Below, piece after piece: positions 1 through 38,000 of a stretch of 64,000 nucleotides of DNA (its first letter is position 1; the number at the start of each line of letters is the position of its first letter). Source of the DNA: Penicillus capitatus (Eukaryota; Plantae; Chlorophyta). The notes beneath the pieces are model-generated. The model was not told the origin of the DNA, made no database searches, and saw only the letters and a program-made list of their open reading frames with translations. Location of the stretch: the NCBI GenBank assembly GCA_965649825.1, contig OZ287706.1:124001-188000 (forward strand), given 5' to 3'. The position numbers and the translations under genes are program-made.

Positions 1-83
1 TCAGTCCCGTTCAGAACAACTGGAGAGCTGATGCAATAAGATGTATAGGAAATTGTCTATTTATGCTAAACAGGCAGAACTCA

Positions 84-1298
84 TCAGTATCCGAATCCAC
101 GGACTGTATGACCCCCGTCAACGTACAATCTCTGGCCTGTGACATATGAGGACGCGGAGGAGGCAAAAAAGCCAACGACACCTGATGAGGACAAGACCAC
201 AGATATAAATGCAAGGTACTGTACACGTAATGATACTTGCGATCTCTTCTGGCTGTGCAGGACGTTGCAGTGGTGTCTCTGCGGTATAAGCATTCAGTTC
301 CTTGGGATCGTTCATCATCTGAGAATCCAAGGGCCTCCACACGGTTTAGATGGACAGAATGCCTTACTCGCACAGACATGTCTGTATCCACCACTCCAGG
401 AGCCACACAGTTCACACGGATTTTGTCCGAGGCCCATTCGCAACACAATGTCCGCGTCAACATGTCTAATGCAGACTTGGACAAGTTATAGTGACACACT
501 ATTACGAAGAAGACGGTGAATGTCATTTCTATTGCTGCACGTTTTACTTCCTGCCATGGCTCGGGTTGATCCTGCAATGGATCCGATGTTGATTACAGAA
601 GAACCTCCACTCGCTTTCAGCAGAGGATATGCCGCCTGTTCACAGCGGAAGTGCTATCAGTCCAATAACAAAAGTGATGGCATCTTCACACTTGACAAAC
701 ATCGATCGCCGATTTGAGGTTTGTGTGCATGATATAATCAAAGTCGTCTCCTGTGTGGTCAACGAAAGGTTTGGAAACCAGGACACCAGCATTGTTGACT
801 ATCCAGTTGACCCATGGTTAGAAACTGAAACGTCCAAGGTAGAGGTTCACCTAGAACTTGTAACTGTCCATCAAATACATCCGCAACCTATCAGACCACG
901 CGTTTGCTTAAGCAGATCGTCGGCCTCCAAAACCGAAACACTCACTTGCTGCATGAGCTTCTTTAACAGTTCGGCATTAGTGACGTCACAGACACATCCC
1001 TAGATGAGACACAGATCGTCTTCCCTGCGGTTGCTTCCATGAAGAAGTTGACGTGAACATCATATCGTTTAGCCGCCATTCTCGAGAGAAGTTCGTCGAG
1101 AGCATCCTGCTTGCGTGCACAGACAAAGACCTAGAGCAACATTAAGAGCACTCCAATCACATCTTTAGAGATTCATCGATTTTAAAAAGGAAGGCGCTCA
1201 CTCACCCTTGCACCCTTGGCAGCGAAGAACTCCACACAGGCACGGCCGATTCCTTTAGATCCTCCCGTCACCAGACAAGTCAATCCTGCCAATTCCAT
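84..1298 (-). CDS. Tropinone reductase-like short-chain dehydrogenase (multi-exon)
   Basis: ATG at 1298 gives MELAGLTCLVTGGSKGIG (TGxxxGxG motif). Later exons give VNNAG, catalytic YNLSK, IRVNCVAPG and terminal SYVTGQRLYVDGG, ending at stop 84. Example GT-AG intron 1131-1205. Confidence 0.9.
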
Positions 1299-1591
1299 TG
1301 TATTGTACAGGGGATGTTCGTGTCCCCGCTTGTCTTTTCACTGGTGCAAGACCGACGTTTCACGATCAATCGCCTGAGTTCAATTCTGTTTATGTCCTGA
1401 ATGACAATGTAACGCGGCTGCGCTGTCATGTCGTCACGGATGAGAACACTCTGATAGCCGGCTGACTCTCCATGCATTTATCGTGATCGGAGATTTATTA
1501 ACGACGACATTTCAGTCTATACGGTTTGAGCGAACTCTTATTGTCTACAACTTCTGTGCTTATCAATTTTGTTTTGTTCTACGCGTCAACG

Positions 1592-3270
1592 ATGTCCAGT
1601 CGGTCGCTTGTTCGACCGGAAGGGAGTCCTGTTTACCACTACAGTCATGCCTCGCATGCGCTGAAAGGAGAGGTTCGTCGCAACATGTTTTGCAGAAAAG
1701 ACATTTCGTTTTAAAGGATGTCGCCTTTGTATGCGACGCACTACAACGTCTTAGCCCTGAGCCCCATTTCATGGGAAAGTGGGACCTCTTTTGTGTGTGT
1801 GACGGACATGGAGGCCCAGAAGCTGCACAATTCGCGAAAATAAACCTTCCGGCGTTGATTGCTGCCCGGCTTCCCAAAGGGACACCTCCAGAAACGGAAA
1901 CCGAAGGTACGTGCTAACATTTATGGGAGGCATGCGTCATGTCATCCTGCGTGCTCAGAAGGACAGGCATGGCTTCAGACTGTCAGAGATGCAGTTAACA
2001 TGGCATTTGTGCAGTTGGACTTGGATTTCAGAAAAGAGAGAATACTGCCAACTGTCGGTACGTATTGTGTGGACACGCACTTTCAAGTCATCACTATGTT
2101 TACGCATATGCAGGCTGCACTGCTACTGTTGTACTATCGTGTGGATGGATTTTGACTGTCGCCAACGTCGGCGATTCGGAAGCCTTTTTGGATTTCGGGT
2201 CTGGAAGTCCACTCGAGGTGACAATCTCACACAAAATCGACACGAACTTGGGTACCGACGATAATATCACCTCTTGCAGGATATCACCCTCTCGGTTGTT
2301 TAGATGAACAAATCCGACTTGCCAAATTGGGAAAAGAAGTTCGACCGTTGTCCGAAGAACTGTTTCGTCCTGCGAGGTCCTATGAAGAAGGAGTTGGTCC
2401 ACTCCGTGTGTGGCCTTGTGGGTTGGCTGTTTCTCGCGCCATCGGTGATTACGATTGTGGATCCGAAGTGCTTGCGTCGCCTCACATCACACAAGTGAGT
2501 GCACATCATCGTCATCTGTGCGCAAGTTTAAAAGAACCACCTGGGTGACAGATCAAGGTTCCTTTCGCCGGAGCTCGGTTGACGGTGGCCTCGGACGGAC
2601 TATGGGACCATTTAACGGCTAAACGTGTTGTCAAGCGCTCAAGGAAACATATTGTCAAAGACGTACCGCATGAACTAATTTCAAAGGCTAAAAGTGCGGA
2701 TCTCACTTTTTACCCAATCCGTTCGAATGCATGTGTGTGCAGAGGTTTCCGCCATTGGATTAACCGACGACACGACAGTTCTTGTATTAGACATTCTGCC
2801 GACGGCAAAAACGGATTTCAGAGAGGTATCAAGGAAACTCCGAGGGCCAAAGACTGTCTTCTCCAACTTGAGCAAACGAATCGGTGGAAGGGTAAGCAGT
2901 ACTCGTCATTGTGATCCGTTTTTATGACTTCGGTGTTTAGAGAAAGAAAGCATGTCACATGTTCGTGTTGGCTACTCAAGATATGGCACCCGATCATCCA
3001 GCACCATATCCGTCTTTGAAATCCTTTGCCTCTGCTGGATCATCTAAAGACCTTAGACCGTCTAGAGAGCATCATTTCCCTGTGCGCAGCAACACCTTCA
3101 CATCGACACTTAAGCAGAAGAGCGACTCCGAATCACAGGAAGACGACGAAGAGAAGGGTCCGGGTGCTGAAGGGCTCTCCATGGATCTCGATGGAGTTGG
3201 ACCAAGTAGAGGGACAGGAACTTCTCTGAGGAGATTCCGGAGCTCCATGATGAACTACAGGCAGGTTTAG
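1592..3270 (+). CDS. Protein phosphatase 2C (PPM family), multi-exon; 3' end uncertain
   Basis: Exons encode FCVCDGHGG, GCTATVV, VANVGDS, LAVSRAIGD, VASDGLWD and DDTTVLV, the canonical PP2C metal-binding motifs. A low-complexity C-terminal exon runs to 3270 and may splice onward to about 3468. Confidence 0.88.
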
Positions 3271-3772
3271 ACGCATCATCGTCCTACGTTTGCTGACGAG
3301 AAATTATGTCCGGGACTCGTATTCGTTATCGCGATACGGTCACAGATAAATTCTTTCATGCATGCAAATGTGAGAGCATACTGTACGGGACAGGCTTCAA
3401 ATAAGCAATCAGATGACGCATACAGGCTCTCTTCTGTCTACATACCTTTCATCCTTTGTTTCGCGTAGCATCCTTGTCGATCTTTGCATTTACGCTTTGT
3501 TGTGTCATACCTCATTGTGCACATCTGCAAATGTACGTGGCAATCAAGAGTGGTGTAATAAGGTGGACTGTCGTATTGGAAGGACAACCTTTGGTGGACA
3601 TTTGGAATTTCAAAATCCGAATCAAAATGCGATTAATGGCCTATCGATTTAGAGGGTGCTGTGTGCGTACACATACTTAAAACATGCACATGAACGCATA
3701 AAAGAAACACAACTGCACAACAGTGCTGAGTAAGTGTTTCTTTGCCTCTGTAATGGCGCTCACAAAAGCATG

Positions 3773-6072
<2,300 letters not shown>

Positions 6073-6124
6073 TGTCGCCGTTTGTCGACGCCAATGGAGT
6101 GGGTAAAGGGCTCAGGCTGGCAGA

Positions 6125-6137
6125 GAGACTTCTAGAA
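6125..6137. promoter_or_regulatory. Imperfect heat-shock element upstream of HSP60
   Basis: GAGacTTCtaGAA (nGAAn inverted units, one mismatch) lies 53-65 bp upstream of the HSP60 ATG. A motif this short could be chance. Confidence 0.3.
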
Positions 6138-8566
6138 GACGTGATGGGACAGCAGACGGAAAACCTGATGCGGACGGATCGCATTTCGCCAATTCATCGT
6201 GCCGCAGCTTGGACATGTCACCCGCGTGTCCAGTCCCGACTGACTCTCGTTCTCTGTGCCCATATAGGTCAAGTGTCGTTTGTTCGCTGGACACATCTGC
6301 ATCTTTCTCAAAGGAAGAGCACACTCATCATCGCACCCGGACGTGAAGTTCAGTGGTGGTAGAGTTGGGTGCAATTCCCTTAAGCGAAGGTCGTTATTGC
6401 TACCTTCGCGAAACGACGTCGCCGCTGTTGCATTGATGCGGCAGACGTTAAAACTCGTGTGCTTCATCATGTGCAAATGAATCACACGAGTGAAGCGGCG
6501 CAAAGCACATTCAGAGACAATGTGTTTCGCGTTAATGCCGACGGCTGCTGTTCACTCTGGCGAACCGTCGAGCGCGCTGTCATATGTTTCACATTAGAGT
6601 TTGGATAAACTGAGCATTTGACCGATTCATTGACAAATCTCAAAAGAGCCCCAGTGGTGGCAGTATTGTTTGGATGGAATTGGGTTCTTTGACACTTCTC
6701 ATTGAAGATACATCAAATGCTTTAACGCTGAGTGTAAAGGCCACCGGCCGTGCACATAAAGACCTAACAAAACCAATTTCACACAATAATGTGCTAGAGT
6801 CGTGGATCATGAATCCATTCCCAGTGGTGGAAGGATGTGTTTGGATTTTTAAGAGATGCGTTAAACTGGTATGGATGTTCTGGACGGAGACCAGAAAAAC
6901 GGTCCCGTTTGTTAAGTTTTCGTTTTTGTTATCCTTCTGTTCCATTTGAAATAGAAAAAGGCTGTGTTCTGAAAGATACCGCAGAACCTCACTGCTGACT
7001 TAATCTGAATATTCCATTTCTGTTCTTTCCGAAGCCCTTGTCGAATTTGCGACACTCAAAGTAAGGCAATTCCTAAGCATTGCTGATCTAGCTTCACTTC
7101 TGTGCAGACTGGAATAGGTGTAGTGAAAATCTCTTGATGCTCACCAACTGACCAAATCAGAAGTGCTTTCGAGAAACTGAAGAATGCAGTGCTGTTCCAA
7201 TGGTGTGCAACATACTTCGAGATTCAGGTATGCTTGCTTGCTTGCTGTCTGAACTCTCTCTATCGGGTGACATGTCCAACAAATACCTCTGACGTGACAG
7301 CACTGCAGTTTGTACAAATCGGTATCAAAAGCAGACAACCCACCTACGTGTTGGGACAGGAATACACTTGTGTTTGGAATTTTCGTAGGATCGGTAGCTT
7401 TGAATGACCATCGAATTGCTTTTGTGTTCTAGAATGATTTCGAAGGAGACAAACTTTGCGAAACTCGAGAAGCCTCCAGAGAAGGTGAGGGACCAAGATG
7501 CATCTGAAGGAGGGTGTGAAGAGTGGGGCGATACAGGTTCTTGTTCATCGATTTCAAGACACTTAGTCGGAGTATTTGAAGCCATCTCTCTCCAATGTCC
7601 AAGTGATGCAGAAGCGTTCGACAATGTCTAAAGTAACGTTGCTCTACACGCAGAGCCGAATTCGCAGAAACCATGAGAGAAAGAAAAACTTGTTTCTATC
7701 GATGACCTTTTCTGGTTTTCAATGAGTCACCACTGACCTTGCATTATCATGTCTCATTGGAATCTGTTTGACATTTTGGTCTGTTCTGCTTGTTGTGCCA
7801 CGCTAGTAAACCGAATCGTCTGTTCACAAGTGTCTCAAAACATTGGCTTTCTTGAATGGACCACTGTGAATATCTGAATGATGAAAACGAAATCAATACG
7901 CCGCGAGATGTGATTAGCTTACAGGTGCCGTGTTTGTGTCCACAGATATTTCTAAGCGGCTTTTCATCATGTACTGTGTTCATGGTCTCTAAGGAATATT
8001 GCTGTCGACCGAGGAATGGCTACATTTATAAAATACCTAACATAGTATTCCCTGGATTTATGCATACCATCGAAAACAGGGGTGTCAGGCAGAGTTCTGG
8101 CTTACCTGAGTTTTTTTGGCTTCTATTTGCTGCATTGGTCGAAGGACGAAGTGAATAAGATAAATCTGAGCTGTCATGCGACGTAAGAATGCAAGATCTT
8201 TTCCAAACGGCGACGTTATCATAGTCGTTTTGTAGTTTCAATTGACAGTGCACATGTATAAAATCTACTTGATATCTCAGCAGAAGGCTGGCTTTATACG
8301 ACTGGTAGAGTCTCAATCACTGCTTATTTGGCGTTGACTGTGGAATGCAAAATGACACAATCGGATCATTAAATGACAAACCTCTGCCTCGGGCAAGGCA
8401 TCTTCCTCGTTAGAATGCTGGCGTTATGATACAGTAGTGTACTCCGTGGTGAGTTTGGAGATTGTAACCACAAACTGCCATCTTTTTTCACGCAGGGCAT
8501 GTCAAATCAATCGCCGTCAATTGTATTTCACGCGGCTCATAACGTCTGAATCATCTTCTCCATTGT

Positions 8567-8608
8567 GAACTTTTCTGCGAACTTTCTGAACTTTTCTGCG
8601 AACTCTCT
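8567..8608. repeat. Tandem 21-bp direct repeat upstream of the NLR-like gene
   Basis: gaacttttctgcgaactttct / gaacttttctgcgaactctct, one mismatch, ending about 70 bp before ATG 8680. Confidence 0.85.
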
Positions 8609-8679
8609 GACGGCAAGCATTTCGACCCGTTCCGTTGAACCCGAAGCGCAAACGTTTGTTTTATACGTTACGTGTGAAC

Positions 8680-11600
8680 ATGCCAACTCGAGCTCCAGAC
8701 GAAGGACCCAGTACTGGAGGGCCTTTCGCGTCGAGTGTCGACGGACAAACTACTACCGTCACCAACGTAGCTGCTGAAGAACTCTATAACCCAAGGATCT
8801 TATGTGCTGTCGCAAAGAAATACAACATCGACAGCACAAAATCGCTCGTCGTTGCATACAACAAGGCGACGGCTAAAGACGAGCGAGCCGTCCTCCTTAA
8901 GTGGTTGCGCAATTATGAAAAACGAAAGAAAGAATGTCTGAGCCACGAGTCTGTTCTCGAATACGCAGAACTGGCTAGAATTAAGCCACGTTCCATACAA
9001 GACAAAGACGTTCTAAAGAGCTTGGTGTTTTCCCTCCGAACGTGTATTCGCGAGGGCGAATTCCTTGAAAAGAATGTGGCTGCTGCCCTTTACAAAGCAC
9101 TTGTACACGTCGATCCTGTGGTATACGGCGGGGTTGCAGAGCTGCTCGTGGTAGCAAAAAAGCTTTTGAGCAGCCTCTCTCCAGAACCGAGACTTACACA
9201 AGATAACTTTGCACAATACGAAGCGACATTCATTGCACTTCGTGAAACTCTTTTCTTACTTTTAAGAACCAATCAGAATGGCGTATACGCAAAAGAGAAG
9301 CATGAACTTCGTCGGGCCATTGCAGAGAAAGAAAAAACGATGGAACTGTCATGCAATTACTATCCAGTGAGCTTCCATTTGAAGACTCTTCGACAAGCAG
9401 TAGAACATCTCAGAACCTTAGACGCTTCTTCGTTTGTTACACATGCAATGCAGTTTATCGGTTGTGGATTATGTGGATTCCTGCATGTTTTTCATTTTGC
9501 AAGAAATCTGGCAAGATGTGACATCGATCCTGCGGCTGTTCAGGATACATACAAAAAAGCTCAAGTTGCCATTGCCAATATGGGAGTGTTAAAGAGACCG
9601 TGGTTTGACTCCTTTCGAAATCTGATGTTAACAAGACAAGAAGCCTTAGAGGACGAAAGGAAGTTTGGGAATTTTGAAAACAATTGTAATGTTGCAATGG
9701 AGCATCAAAGGAACATGAAGAATGGAGAAGATCTGAAGGCGCTGAGATATGGCATCGTTCGTGAGTTGGGTACACTCGCACTCGAAGGTCTATCAGAAGA
9801 CGCCCGAATCGCAGCCACGACGAAGCTGGTGGATCTAGCAACTCAGCAAGCCATCAGCGAAGGATGGAGCGGTGATATCGATATCTTAGTCACACTCATG
9901 GAAGTCATATGTGAACTACATGGAAAAGGCCAACTCAACGAAGACATTGAAAACGCGTTGCTAGTCCTACACCAATCCTGCGAGGGTCTAGCTCAGGGAG
10001 CATTAACAGAATGGTTGGGTGGAAGCAGCATAGAAGACAAGCTTGCACCTCAATGCCCGAAGAAGCCGGACGTGGAATATAAGGATTTGTGTAACAAGGT
10101 TGGGAAAGACGTAGGGTATATTCCACTTGCCATCATGCATTTGACTAGAGAAAAATTAAGGAAAAAATACCTACACGACGAATTCACGACAGTATTACCA
10201 CAAAAGCACATTCAAGTCGATGAAAGCGCCTTGTTTTGTAGGTGATTTCTTGGTTCGAAGAAGGATCTCCCAAACATGTCAAGGATATGAAGCACCATGT
10301 TGTCATTACAGAAGATATCATTGAAAAGCGAGAATTAACGTCAAGAGATGGAACTAAGGAAGTTATCCAAAGAGCGGAAGAAATTGAGGGAACGTCCTCA
10401 AACCGTACAAGGGATCAAACTAAGGAATATTACGAGAAGAAGACAAGAGTCACGAAACCTATTGCTTTAGACGACTTGTTCAAGCGAAGATCTCTCAAAC
10501 CTGAAAATCCAGAAAGCGAAGTTCGAAGGGTACTTCTCTACGGAAACCCCGGCTCCGGCAAGACGTGCATCACAAAAGTTATCGCGCTGTCAAAGGAAAG
10601 CTTCACGTTCTTACAGAGCTAAAGGTAAACATGCGTTTACGTCCATGTATTCATATGCTACAGGTGACATGACACGCGTAAGCGCCCCTTCGCAGATGGA
10701 ACCCTTGGATTCCAAGACAGTCACGATGTGACAGTCTTGTCATTCTGACACGCGCACAAATGGGCGTCGAGAAAAATGGCACAAGATGTCAGCGCCGTTT
10801 ACGTATTGCCGGTGAGAGTTCTCAACGGTGCCGAGTCCAGAGGACAGAAATTGGCAAGTTTCGAGGGTGCGATAGCGCAGATATGCTTCTCCGGAAGCAA
10901 GAGTGATGTCGACTATGAGAGCCTCGTAGCTCAAGTGGAACATGATCTCGACGACCCCTCAGTAATGGTCATGGTTGACGGATTAGACGAGGCAAACGAC
11001 CATACGAGAGAGCTCTTATCCACCATCTGGGAGCGCTCTTGCAAGCTGTTGCTTCTTTCTCGTCCATACAATATGAGAAACGTAGAAACGCATGTTGACG
11101 TTCAAGTGGAATGTCTCGGATTCAACGACCAGCAACTTCGAGAATACATAAGAAGCGAATTGTCAGAAGACGAGGCCCCAAGGCTAATACGTTCTCTTAA
11201 AAACTCCTCTGCCATGTGGGAGATGGCACACATTCCTGTGACGGCACACATTCTATGTTCTTTGTCGAAGGAGCACGGGACCGCGTTTGAAGAGCAAAAG
11301 ACGAGAGTTAGCATTTTTCAAGTATACAACGATATGGCGAACTACATCTGGAAGAGGTTTAAAACAAAGCCGATGGCGAAGAACATAAAAAAATCGGAGC
11401 TGTTTGATGACTTGGAGAGAATCGCATTCGAAACTATTCGAAAAGGTCTAATTCTCATCCCGCCAAGACTTGTCACGCAGTATGCAACCTCGACGGATGC
11501 GGCTGGAACTTTCAAAGAAAGTGGACTCCTTCTGCTCGTGCTAGAAGGCCAAGAATATCAATTCCCTCACCTTACATTCCAAGAGTACTTCGTCGGAAGA

Positions 11601-13133
11601 CATATCGCGAAAAGCTTACGAAATTCAGGATCCAATGATGAAATCAGAGTGCTCGAATTTATTCGCGAAGAAAAATACAATCAGAAACATGCTTTATCGC
11701 TATCATTCGCAATGCATGCATATGCAGAGGGCCAAGGCAAATCCGCATTGCAAAAGATGCTTTCGATTGTTAACGAAGACCCCGTCGAAGTCCTGGGGAT
11801 ACGACACTTTTTTCTGAAAATGCAAGTTTTCGAAGCAATTCTGGAAGAGACAGATAGAAAAGACCTTTCGAACGATGAACAAGCAATCAAGCTCCTAGAT
11901 GGTGCTTGCCATCTGTTGAAGAACACGATCGACGAGGTTCTAATTCGTAAATCTGTAGTTGAAGAGTTCAAACATTTCTCTTGCGTTCTGGAAAAATATC
12001 CTCAAGTACTCAATGACACCGTTGATGAAGTAAAAAATATGCTATCATCTCCGCATAACCTAACGTGGAAAGAAATGGCAAAACTCACGGATGTCTTAAA
12101 GCTAACAAAGCACGCTCCGAATCACAGCTATGGATTAACCGAATTCATCCTGCAACTGGAAAAAACACCCGAGAGTTGGTGCAATAAATTGGAACGTATC
12201 ATAAGATTAAGTGCCATTGCAAAAAATTCGCCCCAACACGCCGGTAAGGCTCTGCCGACGCTGGCGAAGGGGTGCATCGACAAGAACCGGAACGTGCGTC
12301 AGGCGGCAATGGATGCCATTGTCAGGGTCGCCGCGGCGGCTCCGCAACACGCTGGCGAGGCTCTGTCGGCGCTGGCGAAGGGGTGCATTGACGAGGTCTC
12401 GGACGTGCCTTGGGCGGCAATGGATGCCATTCGCTGGGTCGCCGCGGCGGCTCCGCAGCATGCCGGCGAGGCTCTGCCGGCGCTGGTGAAGGGGTGCATC
12501 GACGAGAACTGGAACGTGCGTCAGGCGGCAATGGATGCCATTGTCAGGGTCGCCGCGGCGGCTCCGCAGCATGCCGGCGAGGCTCTACCGACGCTGGCGA
12601 AGGGGTGCATCGACAAGAACCGGAACGTGCGTCAGGCGGCAATGGTTGCCATTGGTAGGGTCGCCGCGGCTGCTCCGCAGTGCGCCGGCGAAACTCTACC
12701 GACGCTGGCGAGGGGGTGCATCGACAAGAACCGGAACGTGCGTGAGACATCAATGCGTGCCATTGGCAGCATCGCCGCGGCGGCTCCGCAGCACGCCGGC
12801 GAGGCTCTGTCGGCGCTGGCGAAGGGGTGCATCGACGAGGACATTCGCGTGCGTGAGGCGGCAGGAAGGGAATTAATCTCCATAAAACCGGAAAAGATCG
12901 TCTTCTTGGCAATTTCAAATATCCCTACTTATAGAGCTGGTCTTCTATTCTTATTTTTGCAGCACCCATTCACGATTGATACTATTACAAAATTCAATAC
13001 AGTTTCCTTTATCTCACATTCAACTTTTTCTGGAGAAATTGGAAAGTGGAGCAATGATCATGTGAATTTATATGTCAATTATGTGAAACGAGAGTTTGAT
13101 GAGAAGTTTCCTGGATTGTTGGAACATGTTTAG
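8680..13133 (+). CDS. NLR-like STAND protein (helical N-terminal domain + NACHT + HEAT repeats), interrupted by an insertion at 10588-10750
   Basis: Exon 8680-10191 and a 50-nt GT-AG intron (10192-10241) join DEFTT|VISWF in frame. Walker A is GNPGSGKT, Walker B VMVDGLDE, then LLLLSRP, HIPVTAHIL, the winged-helix FPHLTFQEYF and six 37-aa HEAT repeats. Removing the insertion plus one TSD copy restores KVIA-HKWASRKMAQDV. Confidence 0.9.
10588..10750. mobile_element. 163-bp solo-LTR-like insertion (TGTCA...TGACA) with 5-bp TSD CGCGC
   Basis: CGCGC at 10583-10587 and 10751-10755. TG...CA termini with a 5-bp inverted repeat. Clear similarity to 17642-17870 at both ends (tgtcaaagga...; cagtcacgatgtgaca). 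Confidence 0.85.
12231..12870 (+). repeat. Six tandem 111-bp (37-aa) HEAT-like coding repeats
   Basis: PQHAG units start at 12231, 12342, 12453, 12564, 12675 and 12786 (exact 111-bp period). Consensus PQHAGEALPxLAKGCIDxxxxVRxAAMxAIxxVAAAA. Visibly more GC-rich than the flanks. Confidence 0.95.
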
Positions 13134-15106
13134 AAAGGTAGTTCAAAGTACATTTATGTTCGCTTTTTTGTGGAAACCAAGATTTCGTGCTCTAGACGAC
13201 GGGCTGTGAACGCAGTCAAAGAGTATTACTATTATTGTCGGTTTTCATCATACATGTACGGGTGGGTCGTCAATTGAGTACTCGACACGAGTGATGAATA
13301 TGGTTTTGCATTTTTGATCGGTCCATTTATATTTATATGAGCGGCGCAAGATGGGACAGATGAGATCGAGGGAACCAGAAGCATCAAGAACCTTTGAATA
13401 CGATTAAAATGAAGTTGATAGATTGAAACATGCCATTTGATCGTTGTTTAACCTCGAAGATTGCAAACGTTTGTAAGGGTATGTTCACGCGCTGCTAACA
13501 TATGTTAAAACGCGGTGACGCAAAGTGATGGGTTATGCTAACTGTTGGTTTTCTGCAGTACTATGCGACGATGAGGCAGGATTGGCACTGAAAAACAGGC
13601 CAAAATCGTCAGCATGGCAGCGGGATTACGCTTGTAGTCGTCAGCAGCTCAAAGCGACTCGATCGACAGAATATGCACGCAACACCGAAAGCTTTTAAAC
13701 CGAAACTTGCCCCTAAAGTTCTTATTTTATATGCCCATGTTCTCCGTTTCATTTGCGTTTTTCTTAGTTACACACACTGAATTCGCGTCTTACGTGCCTC
13801 TTGGCGACACCTTGATTTCATGTCTTCGCCTCACTGCGAGCTACATCTTCAGGCTTTTACCACAGGCTGCGTCTTCTTCTCAGCGTGTCGACTGTCCGTT
13901 TTATCGCGTCAACTGACTGCCATGCTTTCCTCGCCTTTTCTGTAATCCAGGCTGATCACTCAGGGTTAAAGCATCGTCCGTCGCCTCGGACTTTCGGCTC
14001 AGAATTCGACGTCGCCTGCACCTCGGCAATCATCGAATTCCGCCAGTTTCTGAGATTTCTGGCGAGTGTCTAAGAGCTCACAGACGACAGTGACGTTTTT
14101 CCGACCATTCTGAGAATACACGTCACCCAGACTAGTACTCTGGATACTTGCCAATTCACGACTTTCACGTTTTATTGCGGACTCGTCTTTCTACCCCACT
14201 TCGGTCATTTCGCGACCCTCTCGAGCGCTCTCTTAACCGTCGCTGAGTACTTCTTCACGTTCAAGCGACCAGTCCTGACGGCCTTTAAACCGTCGCCGAA
14301 GACTTCTTTGCTTGATCGCCCAGCGGACAAACACTAACAAATCTCTGCGAGGTAAACATCACAACACTTGTTTTCTCTAGTTTTTTTGTCGAAGAATTAT
14401 AAAACACTTGTTGTTGTCTCTTGTTGTTTAGTTTTAAGTCGGTATAAACTGTTAGGTCATCTCGTATCGTAAGTTTATTGTTCTAGAACAGACTGGCCAA
14501 TTCAAAGTAGTATTTATTTGTGTTGCAATTAAGGTATTCCCAAATTGCAAAGGAATTCAACGTCGAAAATGTTGCACTAGGTATCAAAGTAAGAGAACTT
14601 TCAGATTATATATGTCTGAGGTGTCATCTGTTTAAATTCGTTTTTTCATTAAATCATGAAGCTATGAGAAAAGAACAGCTTTTGTGAACAGTTTTTCAGC
14701 TCATTATTCACTTATTGCCTGTGGTAACATACTGTTGGTTGGTAGGAGTTACTTGTTAATGTTATGAATAAGAATAATATTATGCGCATTCCTATAACTA
14801 AGATATTGCACAGTCATCGGTGTAGCAAGTGTGAATCCCATAAAAATGCACCCGCGTTCTATCATCGGAGTCGTCTATGTATCCTATGTGCTAGTATAAT
14901 GAATTTCTTTAATGGTCTCTGATGTGATGCGAGTTTTGAGAGTTGCCGCGCTTCAGAAACGAAAGGTCTGTAATGCCGTAAAATAATACTCCGATTCCAA
15001 GCTCCTTCGTCAGTATGTATATAATTCCTTTTTTACGTGGCATTTGTTTTCACATGTGCCATGAGCAAACAAAAACATACAAAACAAAACCGGTCATTTT
15101 AAAGGT

Positions 15107-15652
15107 TCATAAAATGATAGGAGCACGATTGAACCATCGCTTATGATAGACGAGATTGCAGAGAAATCGCGAATTCTGCCATTTGAGCTCGTACTTTCTT
15201 GGACGACTATGTGGACGACCAATCAAGACTCGAAATTCCCAGTTTGCAGGCGGGATGTGCCGGCATGCTGAGCATTTCAGGAGATGGTCTCTAGTCTCTG
15301 GCACGCGCCCGCATAAGCACCAAAGAGTTGAGTCTCCGTCGGCGGAGTCGAGCAGATTGAATCTGTTGAAATAAACACGGGTTGCCATGTGGCCTAATAA
15401 TAGTCTGCAGAGGGCTGTGAACTGTTTTCCGCTGAGCGATTTCCACCACTTAGACCGAGTCATCTTATCCTTGTCGAAGCCAGTGGCTTTCAGTAAACTT
15501 GTACGATCTGTCAATTCCCAGGTGATCTTTCCCTTCGAGTCTACAAATAGTGAGGTTTCGGAACGTAGTAACTTGAAGCTAGCTTCATCGTCGACATCCA
15601 TGGATTCTAGGATGATCTTTTCCCATCTGTCCCAATTTTCTTGCGACGTTAC
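15107..15652 (-). mobile_element. 5'-truncated non-LTR retrotransposon (LINE) ORF2 C-terminal fragment
   Basis: LCRLLLGH followed by WCLCGRVPETRDHLLKC matches the RxxxGH...CxCG--ET--HLL-C zinc-knuckle tail of LINE ORF2 proteins. No RT core upstream (in-frame stop near 15655). Confidence 0.65.
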
Positions 15653-16731
15653 TTAGTATGCGAATGCAACGTTACATTCATTATGGGATCGATGTAAACG
15701 ACTTCAAGAAACACAGGGTCGAACAAGAACGCGACGACGGCGCAAACGAATGCTCAAACGATAGCACAGGAACTCGAGGATGTTTACAACGGGAATGTCG
15801 GTCTTAAATACCCACGGTGGTTATGAATTCCGAACCATAACGTTCAACAGTCGAGAACTTCAAGGCGCGTTCGGAAACCACCGCCCTACTGTTATGAGGA
15901 AGTTGGCTCGGAGGCCAACACCCGTCGCGTCTGACGGTCAGCGCGCCAGGGTGGTTACCCAGAACCAACCGCTTCCGACGGCTACGAACAACGCACTAGA
16001 CGCTACATCTCCAACATTCATTCTCGAGACCAGACGTTAAAGACCTTTTGCATTTCAACTCATCTACTTCGGCGAAAGCCGACGATCACTATGCCACGAC
16101 AGACGCGAGGAGTTTCGAGTGTGTCATGCTGACCGAATCGGCAAGCTGCAGATTTCCAAGATGTATCCGTTCCCAGAACTATAAAAACCTCCATGTTCTC
16201 AAATGAATGTTCGCGTATAATGTAACGCCGTCGACACTAACACTGCAAACCAAGACGTATGAGAAATAGTCGAAGATACATCCCAAGTTGAAAACGTATG
16301 CCTTTGAACATCATGTGAAAGCATTAACCATAGCGTCCTTATACCCGTGTGCGGACATTATTGTTGCTTTCTGGTTGATTCGGTGGACTTACGTGGCCGA
16401 CTGGGGAGTTTGGTCGGACTTCGTTGTCTAGAGATTGCTCCTGAGAGCCTGCCGAGGGAATGTCCGCTGGGTGAACGACTACTAGGTTAACGCTTCCGTC
16501 TTCGGAGCTTCGTCGAGTGTCGTAGACCCCAACGTTGTGAACCACGCGTTCAGCACCCCTCTGAATGAGCTCTGAGTGTTCGCCTCGACGAAAGCGATTC
16601 AGGGACTCCTGGAACGTTGGATAAAGTGGCGCTTACGGGACCGTCGCTCGTCGAACGTTATGTTAGTCGTTGGCCAGAGTGACGGACACAAGGCTAACAG
16701 CGTAGGCAACAAAAAGGTGTTACAAAGACAA

Positions 16732-16920
16732 TGTCAAAGAGACAGACAAATGGCGAATCCTAAGCCTTTTATTCGGTCCAAGTGATACGACCTTCTAAGC
16801 AGATGATTCAACCGATCACGAGAGCCAGAGAAAAAGACCCTTTCGCGGCACAAGGTCCCCTCTGACAAGACCCCAAGTGTCCCTTGACGAAGTGAGCCCG
16901 TCTCAAACGAGGCAGTCACC
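16732..16920. repeat. Diverged copy A of the LTR-like family
   Basis: Starts tgtcaaag. Shares ctaagcagatga...ccagagaaaaag.ccctt and the terminal aaacgaggcagtcac with copies B and C. Confidence 0.6.
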
Positions 16921-17105
16921 TCGCCACGATCAAAACAGTCATCCTCGCCATAATCGAGGGCGATCCTGGCGACAATTTTGATTGTTAGTTCACAGACGCA
17001 AAATAGATAGTCGGGACTGACCGGGTCGTGTCGGATAGCGGTCAATCTTACAATCGATAGTAATCCTTGTCGCCCGTCGGCCACGTACCGAAGACAAAAA
17101 ACAGC

Positions 17106-17312
17106 GGAAGTCTTTATACAAGTGTTCGGAGCAAGGTCGTACAAGGTCCAGAATGTTTATTAAATACTTGCGTGGTGACTTGACGTCTCTAGGCAGATGA
17201 GTTACCACGCTGCCAGAACCAGAGAAAAAGGCCCTTTGCAAGCCAATGCGCCCTTGTGACAAGACAACAAAGGCCCAAGAAAACATGAACCCCTTCCAAA
17301 AAAAGCAGTCCC
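17106..17312. repeat. Diverged copy B of the LTR-like family
   Basis: ctaggcagatgagttacc...ccagagaaaaaggccctt...gcagtccc lies 394 bp from the matching block in copy A. Both copies are followed by a ctggcgacaat/cttggcgacaat block. Confidence 0.6.
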
Positions 17313-17641
17313 ATCGCCAGGGAAATCTTGGCGACAATCCTGAAAATAAACCGTACCGAAACACTGTCGTCGTAGAAGAGCGGTGGCGAATCTCGGCAGC
17401 TCGAACTTCTCCAATATGCCGCCGCAATCAAAGCATCATTTAACCGCCACACTGTTAATGAGAAGATCTTCGTAAAAAAGCTCATAGGTCATCGGTTATT
17501 CAAACAAAGTCGCCGACCGTTAATGTCTGAACTCAGAGCCTAAGGCGAAGAATTCCATCGTCATTAATGAGCAAATCCAAAGTCGTCAACAAATTGAGAG
17601 GCATCGTGTCAAATAGATGCAGCTTAATCACCACCACATCC

Positions 17642-17870
17642 TGTCAAAGGAAGGCTTTCACGTTTACAGAGCAAAGGTATTTACAAGTTCATATTCCACC
17701 TATCTATACGGTGCATGTGACATGACTTGTCTAGGCAGGTGAGTCACCCACCTACCAGAGCCATGGAAAAGAAACACTAGGGGCGAGGTGAACCTCGCAT
17801 AAGTGCCCTTTCGGAGACAGAACCTTTGGAAACTAGGCAGTCACGATGTGACAGCCCAATCCTACTGATA
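17642..17870. mobile_element. LTR-like element copy C (longer relative of the NLR insertion)
   Basis: tgtcaaaggaaggctttcacgtttacagagcaaaggta ... gcagtcacgatgtgaca-12nt-tgata. Carries a central block of about 65 bp absent from the 10588 copy. No TSD, PBS or PPT seen. Confidence 0.7.
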
Positions 17871-19206
17871 GAGGGATAATGAGATTTGTCTGATCTTCAT
17901 TTTAAGATCTCGTTTTCTCTGCAAAACTTCCAGCGCGATAGAGACCTTGATAGAAGAGAGCGTATGTTCGCATCCGCTGATGTGAGAATTCGTTTTGGAA
18001 AAGTCAAAGCACCGCGCGTTCGCGTTTTGCAGTTCGTCTGTAAAAACGTGCAGATCGCAGTTACCAATCTGTGATCGTGCTCATCCGTTTTTGATGTACA
18101 TTCTCTAGATGATTATGATTTCCTTCACCAGAACAACAGTACAGACACATAAGAGGAGTTCACAACGACCACATAACTCCCATTCGAAACTGTGGAGCCG
18201 TTTATCGAGAGAACATGTCTAAATAATCAGAGCTATCGTTTATTATATCACTCGACCAAGAGACCCTTGCTTGCTGTGTGATGTCAACCATCGTCGGTTT
18301 TCTTTTTATGTATGAAACACAATCATCACTCTTTTTATTTCTGTGGACTGTGTTGTTTAAGTATGGAGTTGCGATGAAGATACTCGCGATTTGAAGAAAG
18401 ATGTCGCTAAAAGTTTGCTTCTTCTCCCGCTTTCATTTACAGGTACGAAATCGCCGAAGGTAGTCTCTCTGAGCGAGAAATGATTCCCTCGGACATTTTG
18501 AAGCTGGAACATTTGTTCTCAGGATAAACACATTTGTCATTGCAGCATTTCCAGAGACGGCGTGCATATCTGTCTCTAAATGAAAACTTGAAAACGTCGC
18601 TTAAATTCTCGCTTTGGTTTGGTGTACGATTCCTTGCGTACCGAAACCAGAAAAGTCCAAAACACCTGCAACCTGTGTACTCCCTCGGTTTAGCGATGCT
18701 ACGATGTAACAACAGTGTTGGCGCCGAAAACATTAATCCTTGACCTCGTGTTGACTCTCATGGGTGGAATTACTTTGCGAACGCGCAAGATACGATTATT
18801 CTAGCGATTTGACCGTCCACTTTACGACAAGAAGCGAGAAAACTCTTGGCGTCTTTGTTAAATGAGCGTGACAGGGCATTCGTCAATTCCAGACTACCCT
18901 GTCATTTCCACGGATACGAAATGCGAGGTTCCTGATTTGGTACTTCTGACGCGACACTGAGTTATCTTGGCTTTTGGTTTTTTATTGTTGTCCAAGAGCG
19001 GTTAGTTCTCTCCGTTAAACTTCACAGTGCGACGGTGGTCTTTTGCTTGTCGATTGCGATTTGTTGTGTGTTTTCTCCGCAGATCTGTTAGTCTTCAACG
19101 GACAGCGCGAACGGTTTGTATTTGTTTATAATTTTCTCGGCCTCCTAAGTTTGCCTACCAGACGACTGACAAACGTATCAACCCCGCGAAAGAGTCATTC
19201 TACGCA

Positions 19207-19573
19207 ATGCGCATTGGAGGTCGCATTCTCTAAACAACTATTCCAAAGACGATGGAGATTTAACTTTTCAGGGATCGCAATTTCCAGCGGGCATGTGGAT
19301 TTTCATTCCGTCGGAGTTTCCGGCGACTGTCACAACGATCACGAGAGATTCGCTAAACAAAAGAAAAGCATCACAGTCGATTTCGACATCATATTCCACC
19401 AACCTCCCTCCGTCAGTGCTTGGGTAACAAGACTGGACGTCGACCGCGAACGCAACGAGCGTTGGGATCTGAAAGTGTCCAACGTCACGACGACAGGCTG
19501 TGTCATTCATTTCAAAACGTGGGGCGACACGTACATCTATGCTGCCACCGTCAGCTTTCAAGCTCTCGGGTAA
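19207..19573 (+). CDS. H-type lectin domain protein; additional 5' exons possible
   Basis: SITVDFDIIFHQPPSVSAWVTRLDVDRERNERWDLKVSNVTTTGCVIHFKTWGDTYIYAATVSFQALG matches the H-lectin (discoidin/HPA) pattern. Intron 19220-19271 joins MRIG|GIAISSG in frame. Confidence 0.8.
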
Positions 19574-32061: not shown

Positions 32062-35000
32062 ATGGGAGTGGCTGTGGTAGACGGTACGCTTCTGCAGGTG
32101 GTTTAAAGTTTTGAGACTGTTGGATCGCCTGCTGACGGGACTTGGGAATTATCTCCTTTGTCCTCGTCTGCTGTCGACTCCTTCACTGCATATGCAATGG
32201 AAGTGTCTACAAGGTGATGTGACGGGTGTGAATGGGATGATGATGTAGAGGGGCATGTCTGCAGGATGCCTCTGTATTCAGCATGTGAATGTGGCACCGA
32301 AGGCGCTCGATGCTTTCGATCTTCCCTTTCAATGCCAGTCAGGTTGATTTGACTCTCACTCATTTCAAAAGGTGTGAGAGATATTTCGACAGCATGGATT
32401 GAGAGAATGGATGTGGAAATTCCGTGGTTTTGGTGGCTGAGGGGACGGAAGATCGAGATCACTGTTCACGGATTCGAAGTGAAAGGAGGATATCGACAGT
32501 TTCCGACGGTCACACCTGTCACATCACCTGACGATCTCCAAACATCGATCTCTCTCTAGTTTGTCTCGCCTCAAGATCACGATGCAGCGCTACGTGTCGC
32601 AAAAACGGTGCTGAGAAAGAATCTCTTGCGTGCCGTGGAGCTTGTTCTGTGGGACGATCGCCTCGCCCGTCATGGTCACACCTCTCTCTATCTATCTTCC
32701 GACAAAAAGAGTGAGAATCTGTCTGCAGGCGGTCAGCTACTGAAACCTTTGCGTGATACTCTATTGCATCTCCTGTTCAAGAATTGGACCCTTCAGTTCC
32801 ACAACACCGCTTTTTCTATGAGCCTAGATCGAAACCGCCTGATCGATGCCCCTTCTCAAGCGTCTGTCCTTGAGCTGTCCATTCGCAGATACGAGTGGAA
32901 CTGCTCTGGAGTCGATGACCATGACCAGTTCACTTCAGAATGTCAACTCAATGTACCATCCACCCTATACAGTCAACCATATTCATCCTCTTGTCTTGGT
33001 CCCTGTCTTAGGGCATCTCGTGTACCATTCATACAAAGGACGATGGTGGATCGGATGTGCATTTTCGTATCCTGCACCAGTGGTGTCTACAGGGCTGCCT
33101 TATCTGGAATCGATCGGACGATCCTGAAATCCCTGAGCAGTTTTCTATCAAGATTCGTGCCAATGCACTACTGCTGTCCCTATCGGATGTCACCATCCAG
33201 GCCCTCCTGGAGATGGTCCTGCAATTCTCAGAGTACTACGCCTTTGTGCGTCATCGATGTCGTCGCCCACAAGATGATGTGATGCAAAACCCGGCCGCCT
33301 GGTGGCAACACGCCGGTTACTCCATTGTCCATGAGATCGGACGCGTCTGCAGCATGAAACGTCACATCAATCGATTGGGCGAGAGACGTCAGGTACGTCT
33401 ACAGTACGATCGACTGTACTCCAGATACCGAAGACTCAAACGATGGAACTGGCGATTGGGTGGTCTCTTCTTCGGCATGCAGGAATCGGCCTATCGATCT
33501 CTACAGCTATTAGAGCAGAGGCTCTCCACCGTCGAAGTGGCAGAGTTCCGATGGTGGTCATGGGCACAATACATGAAACATAAGACCAGCGAGATCCTTT
33601 TTGACGAAGTCAAGCTCAAACTCATGGAGATCTACAATCTCCTCGGTGCAGAGAAGGCCGTTTCGGTCTCTCCCCTCCAGTGGATGATCGAGACAGCCGT
33701 GGAGTGTCCCAAAGTATACGGATCCAGTTGATCCAGATGATGTGACTGACGCCTGCTGTGTTGTCGGGTTGGTTCGTTTCAGATAAGTGTGATGCTGGAT
33801 TTGGATGATGCATTTGGATTGCTCGTATCCGTAAGAGATATCGAATTTCGAATGCACAGTGAGGACCTCGACGAGACAAAGATCCAGACATCCGACGGAC
33901 CGTTCGAGATCCAACTCACCTGCGCATCCCTCGAGGTCAACATCCGAGTCATCTCCCAATGATGTGACCCGAGTCGATCTGTGCTGACCCACACGCATAG
34001 GTATTGCACGAGAAGCTCGGACAGAGACGGCCTCACAGTGTGGCATCGAGACCAACGGGTCAGCATGGGAGAGAGAACGAGGAGTGGCTGGTCCGCAGTC
34101 CGCCTCCGTCTCGGTACAGCGGTCCACATGCGTTTCTCAAGTTAACGTATATCGAACCATATATCTCATCCATTCGACCGAAGACACTGGACATCACGGT
34201 GGCGCCCATCGATCTCTCCTACATCGAAAGAGTGATTCTCAAACTAGCGCGTTTTGTTGGCAAGATGACGTTGTGCTGTCATCACGATGCCCATCTCGGC
34301 AGTCCAATGCTGGATCTGCAAATGCGTATTCAGGAGATCGTGGGCGAAGTCGATGCTAATCTGAAACAGGCGGCGCCGATGCATCAACTGGCACTGCAGG
34401 TCTCCATTGGCGATGTGCGCATTATGCTCCCCTGCCGGCGAGGCATCTCATTCGATCGACGCACGGCCAGTGGACACCGTGCTTTCAGACGACTGCGTCA
34501 CATTCGCCGTTCCGGCAGGAAATACCATCTCAATAGTCGCCAACCCTTCCTCGTCGTCGTTCTGAGCGGATTCAGCATGAGTACAGAGATGGATGAGTGG
34601 GAGGAGTCGATGCAGAATACCATCAGTCTAACCGATGCCCTTTCTGCTCGCGAGCAGATGATCGTCAAGGAGGAATCGTGTGAGATTTCGGACGTGGGAT
34701 CGCCGAGGGCAAGTTCCATTTCTGCCATGTCGGCTGAAGATATGGCCGAGGATCTCGCAATGAAAACCAATCGTATCAACTCGCGTCGTCTATCGATGCA
34801 GTTCTCCGTCCAGGCTTTTCTGGGCGATCCCTTCTCCCCTGGCGAAATGACCTTCCATCGGCAAGTGCAGTTGCTCAAGCAGATGACCATCCAAGCCATC
34901 TGCAATTCCTGCGTCCAGAGCAATCTCCTTGAAGAGACCAATCACACCATAAAGGTTACCAATGCCAGAATCTCACTCTTTTCTGTCAACCCGTGTGGTA

Positions 35001-38000
35001 CAGATCCAGTTGCATACGTCGGAATTGGAATGCTATTTCTCGGCCCTGTCGCTTTGTGAGCTCTCCCAAGTGGTGGATAGTTTTACTGAGGTGCAGAGCG
35101 TATTGTCTGAGCTCTATCATGCCTTGATCCATTCCAGAGAGGACGGACATGGGCACGATGCTGATCACAGAGTTGTGCACTCTCACTCTTTTGCGCTGTG
35201 TGTGAGAATCTCTGTTGTGATAGAAATCGAATGCCTCGGTTAGAGATGTCTCCTCGACCATGGAGCTCTCTCTCCGCATTCCGGTTCTCTCCGTGAGTTT
35301 CGCCCAAGTCTTTTCTTTCGACGCAGACGTCACATCACCTCATCTCCGACTGGGTCACATCACCATTCACATGCTCGAAGCAAGCATAACGTCCCAATGG
35401 GTGCCTCTATCTCACCTCCTCCTCTCGACATGTGTCCAGGTCATCACCGTGGCAGAGGATCACAGAACGGAAGTCGATTTCCTGATTCGGAGAATGGAGG
35501 TGGTGTTGGACAACATCCTTGGGCACACGGCATTGCGAGCTGGAGCACCGTCTCTTCCCCTGCCGTTCACGATTCTGAGACCGATGCCCGCCGCTCTGAT
35601 CCCCACACTGATGACGAAGCGTAAGACGAAGCTCAGAACCTTCCAGGCATGGCGAAAATGCGTCAAAGAAAAACAGAAGCGTCGCCTGTCGCGTCCTTGG
35701 GCAGATGAGGGTCTTTTCAATCAGCTTCAGCTGTCGGGTCATGTTCTGATCTCGGAGAATGCCATGTCTGTCTCAGTGATGACGACGTTTCTCGTCCTGT
35801 CTGTGGACAATCAGATGGTGGATGCTTGTGTGGCCTATTATGAGGAGGTCGTCAAATGCAGCGAGCAATTTCATCTGGACATGCAAGAGCTGAGAAAAGA
35901 CGCGATGGGTGTGGGACAGCGACCTGCACTGCCGTTTCAGGAAACGCGGACGTTGCAGCGAAGGGATACCGAAACGGAGCGGCAGAGATTTGTCCTACAT
36001 GGAGATTTTGGCCTTGGCTGCGTTCGTATGTGCTGCAGTGTCGATGGCAAACGGCTCTCGACGATCTCGGCCACCAATGCCAAAGGACGCGTCGAGTATC
36101 AGGGCGGCCAGATGAACTCGCAGCAAGCGACCCTCAGAATCGAAGACACCCTTGTATGGTCCCTCTCTCACTTCTCACACAAATGAGATGATGTGACTGC
36201 TTCGAACGGTGACAGGTGATCGATCATCTGGCTCAGTCGCCGCTCTACAAGATCATCCTGGATGGTAATATTGATGAGAAGAGTGACTGTCTGGACGAGA
36301 CCTGTCAAATCAACATCTCCTATGAATCCAGTGGTGTGACCTCTCTTCGGAGCAGATGATGTCATACGATGCATGGATGGGTGTCTCTAGTGCGTTATTC
36401 CGATGCTCGACCACTGCACATGTCCTCTGTCGATAACCCAGAAGCTTCTGTCATCGATCAAGCCTCCGTCTGTGGCGTACGTTGTCTTTCTGTCGTTTTC
36501 GTGTTTTCTCAGTGATGTGACTGGTAGATGGGGCTGCAGAGTCGAAGTACAATAAAGGCGACGTGTTCTCGAATGCGGATGGTTTTGATCGCACGTTTCA
36601 TCAAAGACCTGGATCACTTTTTCAATTTGGCCGTCTTGCAGTACTTTGCTGAACCGCCTAACCACAGAGGAACAGACAATGCGATGACGTTCACTGTCGA
36701 AGTGGACATCCATCACTACCGTCTCGTCATTCCCCGTTTCTCATGGTCACACGATCTCTACGCCCTCATTGGCACAAAAGTGACCACAGACGATCATGTG
36801 CGAGAAAACAGAGATGGCATTCCTGTAGGCACGTCTTCTGCTGCCAGCATCTCCCAACTTCATTGCACATGTGATGGACTCTTTGACGACGTTGATGCCC
36901 AAGACGACGGCATTGAGCTTTGATGGATTCTGGAAAGACATGCTGGAAATGTTCACCGGTGATCTCGAAACGCATTCGCCGCATCGCCGCCGCCGTCTTG
37001 CCTCTGAATTCGGTGCCGCGAATGATCCCCAGTTTTCATCCCTGCCCGAAGACGCCGGCAGAATTCTGATCCAATTTGAGAAGGCGTATCTGGAATGGTG
37101 TCATCGATTCTCCCCGGACGTCACTCTGAGAAGACGCGTTCTGGACGGCGGCGACATCGCTGTCGTCAAACACGGCATCGACATCGAGGTAACCTTCAAT
37201 AAAGACCCGATCCAAATCCAGAAGCGAGTCATCTGGCTGGCATAGGTCCTCTGTCCCTCCGCGCGTTGTGTCATGGGCGATGCACAGTTTTCATTGCTGA
37301 TGGACGCTATCTCACAGAACTACCAAGAACCAAGCTCGTTTACACAGGAAGAACCCGCTGCTGTTCGACCAGGCCATCCTCTGCCAATGGCATCGTCGCC
37401 GCCAGAGGCACTCGGTATTCTGGACACCGAAGTGCCGACACTCAACGTCCATGTGCACTTCGCCGAATGCGCCTTCCTCTTCGAATCACCCGTTCCGCAC
37501 TCTTCTGACCCCGAGATGCTGTGCAAGGGCAAAAGAGAGGCAGAAATGTTCTTGGACGATGCCACTGTGACCTACAAAACATACGATACAGGATCCAGTC
37601 GAGTACAGATCGTTTCCAAAGGCGTCCTGCTAAACGACGCCCGACGGATCTCTGACGATGGCACCTGTGTGACCGTCCTGACGATCGATCCTGTTCGTAG
37701 CGGAGATGGCAGTCACTTAAACAGAATCGCCTCAGAGACGCAGACCAGGTGGAGAAAAGTGTGGGAGACACTCAGACCTCGTGAAGCCGCTCAGCGTCCA
37801 TCATCTACAGACCACAGTCATGAAGATGCCTTCTCCAGGGCGTCCGGATTCGTGTTCGATTTCATTATCCAGCAGAGGGAAGCATCTGTCGTTTCGGGAC
37901 CAATGGTGATGGAGATGACGTTTCTCGAAGCAGCTGTCGTCTGGCCGTACTTTCGAGATCTCTCGCTCGTTGACAAGATAGCTGAGATCTTTCGACGGCA

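Follow-up and report, generated by a model that had tools for sequence, protein, structure and literature searches.

What becomes of a receptor-like gene when a short, transposon-like sequence lies in the middle of its nucleotide-binding domain, and what is that sequence? The question is raised by a locus of the green alga Penicillus capitatus within a 64,000-nucleotide stretch of DNA (GenBank assembly GCA_965649825.1, contig OZ287706.1, positions 124,001–188,000; hereafter the window, to which coordinates refer unless stated otherwise). In this window, a NACHT-HEAT receptor-like gene on the plus strand is interrupted by a 163-bp element, here called el1, flanked by two copies of a 5-bp repeat. 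The same locus is present without the element on an allelic contig, and we read the occupied allele as a transposon knock-out.

The insertion site and the interrupted gene

A CGCGC at 10583–10587 is followed by the 163-bp el1 at 10588–10750 and by a second CGCGC at 10751–10755 (the element and both repeat copies are given without strand). The initial annotation had described this segment as a TG...CA insertion with a perfect 5-bp target-site duplication (TSD), and our reading of the sequence and a script both agree with it. The element begins with TGTCA (10588–10592) and ends with TGACA (10746–10750), i.e. it has 5'-TG...CA-3' ends and a 5-bp terminal inverted repeat. The insertion point is 22 nt, or seven codons, 3' of the Walker A motif GNPGSGKT (10542–10565). 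When the flanks are joined without el1 and one TSD copy, the two open reading frames (ORFs) fuse in frame as ATC GCG CAC AAA TGG (I-A-H-K-W), as had been claimed, and paralogues and the empty allele read the same.

The decisive evidence is a natural allele that lacks the element, which the initial annotation had proposed to look for. The matching contig stretch (L034) was reached by an exact match of a 93-residue ORF (3849–4130, minus strand) and belongs to ENA ERZ25074695 ctg340479_41x_l, which carries one CGCGC at record positions ~151038–151042 and no element. Window positions 8–10587 align to 6160–16742 of this counterpart (98.67% identity over 10.6 kb) and positions 10751–12863 align to 16738–18850; the two blocks overlap by exactly 5 bp, which are CGCGC, and the flanks of el1 are otherwise collinear with the allelic contig. 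The frame of the empty allele is continuous through the site (...KVIAHKWA...), where its ORF reads ...KVIAHKWASRRMAQDV... and ...GNPGSGKTCITKVIAHKWASRRMAQDV.... Because a natural allele has a single CGCGC without el1, the element is a real, polymorphic insertion and the CGCGC repeat is a true TSD. Overall, the window is a haplotype or strain 98.7–99.6% identical to ctg340479_41x_l (0.4–1.3% diverged), and at one end the two show 85 differences over 19.4 kb. On these alignments, the occupied and empty sites are two haplotypes of one locus in the same species.

Paralogous loci give the same picture. A homology search with the joined NACHT region returned 66 relatives, and the joined 120-nt empty site aligns to five paralogous loci without gaps at 82–91% identity. 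The sequence L031 has exactly CGCGC at the site and contains the exact junction string AAAGTTATCGCGCACAAATGGGCG. The top paralogous proteins (55–79% identity) are uninterrupted, with the consensus GNPGSGKTCI(T/S)K(V/A)(I/V)A-HKWA, and el1 is absent from six paralogous loci as it is from the allelic contig. The chance expectation for an exact 5-bp TSD that is single in the allele and in all examined paralogues, combined with inverted TG...CA ends, is ~1e-6.

The interrupted gene has two exons on the plus strand. Exon 1 (8680–10191) encodes a 504-residue all-helical N-terminal domain that is common to the paralogues P0042, P0044, P0097 and P0098. It is followed by a 50-nt spliceosomal intron (GTATTA...TTGTAG, 10192–10241, plus strand) across which the frame changes and of which P0042 has a read-through version. 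As delimited by ORF and domain searches, the part of exon 2 upstream of el1 (10242–10587, plus strand) encodes the beginning of NACHT, including Walker A, and the downstream part (10756–13133, plus strand) encodes the remainder of NACHT with a Walker B motif (MVMVDGLDE, ~10965–10991), a helical linker, HEAT units and a C-terminal tail. In the empty allele, the NACHT profile PF05729 matches with 58.5 bits (cut-off 26.7) over profile positions 1–166 of 167 and spans the site, which bears out the initial view of a NACHT domain that is split just past its P-loop and otherwise intact. PF05729 is also present in most paralogues. The HEAT region matches PF02985 (69 bits) as well as HEAT_EZ and HEAT_2. 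The predicted product of the uninterrupted gene thus has the NACHT domain and C-terminal repeats that are typical of NACHT-clade NOD-like receptors (NLRs) among the STAND NTPases. The HEAT array comprises ~6 units of 111 nt in the window (12120–12863; units 84–92% alike) and at least 20 units, with a frame change within the array, in the empty allele. The N-terminal domain had been labelled an effector; we do not retain this label, as the segment 8680–10191 has no Pfam match and no PDB sequence match, and its low-confidence AlphaFold2 model (pLDDT 61) is all-helical and recovers generic solenoids only in Foldseek (TM ~0.2).

The element closes the reading frame on both sides. The upstream frame stops 11 codons into el1 (…KVIA-LSKESFTFLQS*) at a premature in-frame TAA (10620–10622, plus strand), which ORF reading confirms at the position first reported, and a second sense-strand stop, TGA at 10746, lies in the downstream frame. 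Beyond the element, the frame stays open from 10755 onwards and has its first ATG at 10776; both gene halves are otherwise without stops or frameshifts. Some GT-AG pairs had previously been found not to restore the frame, and this holds for the full enumeration of sense-strand GT-AG, GC-AG and AT-AC pairs, none of which restores the conserved AHKWA. All splice pairs that keep the frame open remove coding sequence; those that remove least reach the AG at 10771 (e.g. 10589–10771), and pairs to this AG or beyond have poor sites and delete at least the conserved HKWASR. The expected product of the occupied allele is a stub of ~630 residues that would consist of the N-terminal domain and the P-loop. 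Because Walker B, the remainder of NACHT and the HEAT sensor are cut off, this allele is, on its predicted coding capacity, a transposon knock-out.

Identity of the inserted element

We favour, with moderate confidence, the reading of el1 as a solo long terminal repeat (LTR), or as an LTR derivative of the type known as terminal-repeat retrotransposons in miniature (TRIMs). The TG...CA ends, 5-bp inverted repeat and 5-bp TSD point to insertion by an integrase, and hence to an LTR. Its length also fits: el1 has 163 bp and its older copies ~230 bp, compared with LTRs of 156 bp and 184 bp in two full-length Gypsy-type elements that lie in paralogous loci. The first (L035:12884–17437, ENA ERZ25074695 ctg340486_42x_l, ~4.55 kb, with RVT_1 and integrase) has 156-bp LTRs that are 100% identical (TGTTG...GAACA) and a TSD of CCGT. 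The second (L033:12349–17264, ENA ERZ26696514 ctg303794_167x_l, from a related assembly) has identical 184-bp LTRs (TGTTG...CAACA) and a TSD of CTCA. LTRs of 150–190 bp with TGT...ACA inverted ends are therefore demonstrated in the same and in a related assembly. These two elements also share the LTR-adjacent sequence TGGTTTCGGAGCGAGG, which is likely their primer-binding site.

If el1 is a solo LTR, an LTR retrotransposon would have integrated into NACHT exon 2 through its integrase, with a staggered 5-bp cut and TG...CA ends. The interior would then have been lost when the two short LTRs recombined with each other, which left one LTR between the TSD copies. The event would be one instance of birth-and-death turnover in a large family of receptors, which LTR elements have hit repeatedly.

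Relatives of el1 were sought by sensitive blastn and an nhmmer profile; 20-mer searches with three mismatches matched only el1 itself. Five copies were found in ~130 kb: el1, three more in the window (el2–el4) and one decayed copy in L035 (el5), which is from the same assembly as the allelic contig. No copies were found in L001, L002, L003, L031–L033 or L036. The best relative, el2 (17642–17870, plus strand, 229 bp), is ~74% identical to el1; its 5' end TGTCAAAGGAA is as in el1, its 3' end is mutated to TA, and its flanks (CATCC and GAGGG) form no TSD. The other two copies in the window are decayed, i.e. el3 (17095–17275, plus strand; nhmmer E = 3.7e-07) and el4 (16732–16950, plus strand; 5' end TGTCAAAGAGA; nhmmer E = 2.8e-06). 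A 68-bp internal segment is kept in all four older copies and missing from el1, so that el1 is an internal-deletion variant. In el2 and el4, homology extends beyond the 3' end of el1, as expected if these copies comprise an LTR plus adjoining interior.

The copies el1 and el2 also share internal motifs. One is a hairpin in el1 (CAAGACAGTCAC-GAT-GTGACAGTCTTG, 10713–10739, no strand assigned), the core of which (CAGTCACGATGTGACAG) is identical in el2 and in which one stem pair shows a compensating change (A-T in one copy, G-C in the other). As a whole, el1 is not unusually structured (z = -1.7). A scan of JGI metagenomes with the hairpin 20-mer GCAGTCACGATGTGACAGTC gave 27 loci, of which 26 belong to an unrelated high-copy repeat and one is random. 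The repeat (L004–L030; Ga0056115, Ga0056116, Ga0209568) comes from another organism and its similarity is confined to GCAGTCACGATGTGACAGTC; this is probably a coincidence amplified by copy number. The el elements have no Rfam match (gathering threshold; E <= 1) and no ARAGORN match. An origin from a short interspersed nuclear element or a ribozyme element is unlikely, as there is no tRNA or Rfam signal and no A-rich tail or tail derived from a long interspersed nuclear element (LINE).

Several observations weigh against the LTR assignment. First, searches of the window, of L002, L035 and L036 (same species) and of L001 and L031–L033, i.e. of ~130 kb of non-allelic same-species sequence and ~90 kb of the related assembly, turned up no complete parent element with paired el-type LTRs, gag-pol, a primer-binding site or a polypurine tract. 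A tblastn search of the window with the gag, pol and integrase proteins of L033 likewise gave no retrotransposon proteins near the el copies. Second, the four other copies lack intact ends or a TSD, and the combination of TG...CA ends and a 5-bp TSD is seen in el1 only. Third, the nearby proven LTR families give 4-bp rather than 5-bp TSDs and are unrelated to el1 in sequence. Fourth, promoter and poly(A) signals are weak: TATA-like strings are weak, and el1 and el2 share only a TGTAA on the minus strand. TGTAA is the chlorophyte poly(A) signal, and its sharing by el1 and el2 makes the minus strand, antisense to the gene, the likelier sense strand of the putative LTR. Finally, a young polymorphism is explained more simply if a 163-bp non-autonomous element inserted in a single step than if an insertion was later reduced by LTR-LTR recombination.

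The motif TGGCGACAAT, common to the sequence after el3, el4 and el5, was considered as a primer-binding site and rejected: it is separated by at least ~14 nt from the presumed end of the LTR, is not adjacent to the CA end and has no match among the checkable tRNAs.

The LTR label of the initial annotation is thus sustained in part, by termini, TSD length, fit of size and the 156–184-bp LTRs in paralogous loci; the parent, primer-binding site and polypurine tract that would complete it were not found in the sequences searched. The same applies to its proposal to search for the parent and for further copies, which yielded four relatives (three in the window, one in L035) but no full-length parent and no second copy with TG...CA ends and a 5-bp TSD.

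The strongest competitor, which we consider unlikely but worth serious consideration, is that el1 is a non-autonomous DNA transposon similar to a miniature inverted-repeat transposable element (MITE), mobilized by a DDE transposase, either of the retroviral-integrase (Ginger-like) type or from a different family with 5-bp TSDs. It would have inserted directly as 163 bp, with the same knock-out of the gene. This would explain a small polymorphic insertion in one step. The TGTCA/TGACA inverted ends extend by eye to ~10 matches in 13, el1 would be an internal-deletion derivative of the ~230-bp form, as is common for MITEs, and the searched sequence has no LTR-retrotransposon interior next to an intact el copy. 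However, the perfect terminal inverted repeat has only 5 bp, a repeat search reports none longer, and el1 therefore falls short of the ~10 bp or more by which a MITE is recognized. Nor do the five copies in ~130 kb, four of them decayed, form a homogeneous multi-copy family, and the genuine LTRs that lie in paralogous loci (one of them from the same assembly) share the TGT...ACA 5-bp inverted ends and a similar length. Known transposon groups fit poorly as well: the inverted repeats of Ginger elements are long and their TSDs mostly of 4 bp, and Transib elements combine 5-bp TSDs with CAC-type ends. On balance, we retain the solo LTR or TRIM-type derivative as the preferred identity of el1.

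Age of the insertion and fate of the occupied allele

How long has the occupied allele carried the element, and could it still function? Allelic divergence is 1–3% across most of the region. It reaches 6.8% in the 10501–11000 bin, where nearly all differences lie at 10774–10968, just past the insertion, and 10–17% in the HEAT array, where the repeat register is uncertain. Elsewhere, the density of single-nucleotide differences between the window and L003/L034 is very uneven, with none at 49.5–56.8 kb and ~1.3% at 44.8–49.5 kb. When the 45 differences between the alleles in the NACHT segment were polarized against five paralogues, 16 changes proved derived in the occupied allele and 11 in the empty allele; these counts show no clear excess of derived changes that would indicate relaxed constraint after the insertion. 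Since both gene halves are open and the occupied allele has no clear excess of derived substitutions, the insertion is probably recent. That the event looks recent had been noted from the open halves, and the polymorphism and the derived-change counts now add to this. Most economically, these data suggest that the insertion took place after most of the allelic divergence had accumulated.

A functional consequence had also been proposed, in which the gene is split into an N-terminal protein with Walker A and a NACHT-HEAT protein without Walker A that starts at ATG 10776 and is driven from the LTR. We likewise weighed whether selection may keep the insertion allele as a split or regulatory receptor, formed by the N-terminal and P-loop stub together with the Walker-A-less protein, and consider this very improbable. 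Both halves are free of stops and frameshifts and the occupied allele has no clear excess of derived changes, as such a reading would have it, but a young knock-out would have intact ORFs just as well, and the extrapolated estimate of ~2 stops holds only if all allelic divergence postdates the insertion. The ATG at 10776 is an internal methionine that is conserved in most paralogues rather than a new start, and if the minus strand, which carries the TGTAA, is the sense strand, transcription from an LTR promoter would run away from the downstream ORF. A NACHT domain of a STAND NTPase that lacks Walker A cannot bind nucleotide. In addition, the HEAT frame change in the empty allele and two transposon-broken paralogues fit birth-and-death turnover and not refinement. 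The proposed functional split is accordingly not upheld.

Equally little credit, or slightly less, is due to the idea that el1 is spliced from the mRNA as an introner-like intron and that the gene remains functional. Transposon-derived introns, including solo-LTR introns, are documented (PMC12130899). On its minus strand, el1 with its TSD reads GCGC|GTGTCAG...CTTTCCTTTGACAG|CGCG, with a polypyrimidine stretch before a final ACAG, and would plausibly make a GT-AG intron of 165 nt, with a single extra codon left in the message. The gene runs on the opposite, plus strand, though, where the only splice pairs that clear both stops delete HKWASR or more, and the older el copies sit in transposon-rich, non-genic DNA and not in introns. 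A related and broader view, to which we give a small chance only, is that the LTR-type elements of the el family may be able to act as introns, with el1 as a lethal-orientation antisense copy that is still polymorphic, or else that the occupied allele may persist as a receptor variant of a split or decoy type. If the el family were intron-capable, insertions in the opposite orientation would be tolerated as new introns.

Least probable, almost negligibly so, is an artefact or chance origin, i.e. an assembly error or templated filler at a repaired break: only one el copy has intact ends and a TSD, but related copies exist elsewhere, the flanks are collinear with the allelic contig and the chance expectation is ~1e-6.

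Family turnover and comparison with known systems

Other members of the receptor family have also been hit by transposons. The Gypsy-type element in L035 lies inside a HEAT repeat of the paralogue P0012, the coding sequence of which is continuous across the empty site (GCVDEDSTV|RAAAMEAMGRV), and the one in L033 lies in the C-terminal coding region of the paralogue P0021 (…FLSRS|FTLNPP…). Counting the el1 locus, three of the eight examined family loci carry LTR-type insertions in coding sequence. A shifted HEAT frame, as within the array of the empty allele, is also entered by P0002. This pattern fits the birth-and-death turnover that is familiar from NLR families, as far as gene sequences can indicate.

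More distant matches occur in bacteria. P0061 and P0063, NACHT proteins of Cytophagales metagenome-assembled genomes, are 33–36% identical to the algal family over 53–64% of the query, and P0061 also carries HEAT repeats. These matches may raise the question of horizontal transfer of a NACHT-HEAT module.

The remainder of the window sets the genomic context. The 13–19 kb region that follows the gene is poor in genes and rich in transposons, and holds the three decayed el copies on the same strand at 16.7–17.9 kb. An ORF within it (15107–15601, minus strand) appears by eye to be the C-terminal zinc-knuckle region of a LINE reverse transcriptase and has no Pfam match. Further along, an ORF at 19043–19573 (plus strand) contains an H-type lectin domain (PF09458, 64 bits), and a VPS13 gene has a VAB domain match at 39564–41420. 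Housekeeping neighbours of an ordinary kind lie at 1480–5600 and 33000–46000. Upstream of the interrupted gene, PP2C-like exons (~1.5–3.3 kb, plus strand) were recognized by eye, and exons of a mitochondrial-type Cpn60 (3.8–5.6 kb, minus strand) were recognized by eye and from Pfam labels on the allelic locus. The best named relatives of a Ser/Thr kinase gene (54590–55741, minus strand) are from Bryopsis, Apatococcus, Tetradesmus and Coccomyxa. The allelic contig carries light-harvesting chlorophyll a/b genes shortly past the window end, and on both findings a fungal host is rejected in favour of a chlorophyte.

The locus offers a clean allele-level case in which a transposon appears to have knocked out a green-algal NLR-like gene, and sequences of both the occupied and the empty allele are available. 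The mechanism is textbook and such knock-outs have been documented many times in plants and fungi. The case is of value mainly for annotation, which gains a pseudogene allele and a new family of short LTR-like repeats, and as a marker in population studies of the alga; the main additions made here are the empty-site allele and two further transposon-broken paralogues. Together with these paralogues and an at least three-fold difference in HEAT number between alleles, the case suggests that the poorly studied algal NACHT-HEAT family turns over by birth and death and through transposons, as do plant R genes and fungal NLRs.

Compared with known mobile elements, el1 most resembles solo LTRs of Ty3/Gypsy and Ty1/Copia elements, with which it shares (i) TG...CA ends, (ii) a short terminal inverted repeat, (iii) a TSD in the 4–6-bp range, (iv) the presence of a single repeat and (v) insertion polymorphism. 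It differs from them in that neither a corresponding complete element nor a primer-binding site, a polypurine tract or U3-R-U5 landmarks could be demonstrated for it in the sequences searched. The el family is also like TRIMs, which have terminal repeats of ~100–250 bp and 5-bp TSDs, and the three same-strand decayed copies with short spacers at 16.7–17.9 kb loosely resemble the tandem LTR-interior-LTR arrays of TRIMs, although the el spacers contain no convincing primer-binding site or polypurine tract. Small size, internal deletion, TGT...ACA termini and a short TSD are shared with MITEs and Ginger elements, from which el1 differs in its perfect inverted repeat of only 5 bp and in the lack of a homogeneous multi-copy family. 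With introners, el1 has in common that it is a short element in a coding exon and that its TSD completes splice-like signals on one strand; here, by contrast, these signals are antisense to the gene, and no el member was seen acting as an intron.

As for the gene, one survey of green-plant NACHT proteins, which in green algae occur combined with WD40, reports WD40 partners and contains no mention of HEAT (PMC4773052). Transposon and presence-absence alleles of plant R genes and fungal NLRs provide the closest parallel, as they too are polymorphic knock-outs in large, fast-evolving NLR-like families, whereas the present case differs in its green-algal host and in an architecture that joins a helical N-terminal domain to NACHT and HEAT. 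The likeness to fungal NLRs extends to the repeats themselves, since the variation in HEAT unit number between alleles resembles the highly internally conserved repeats of those receptors.

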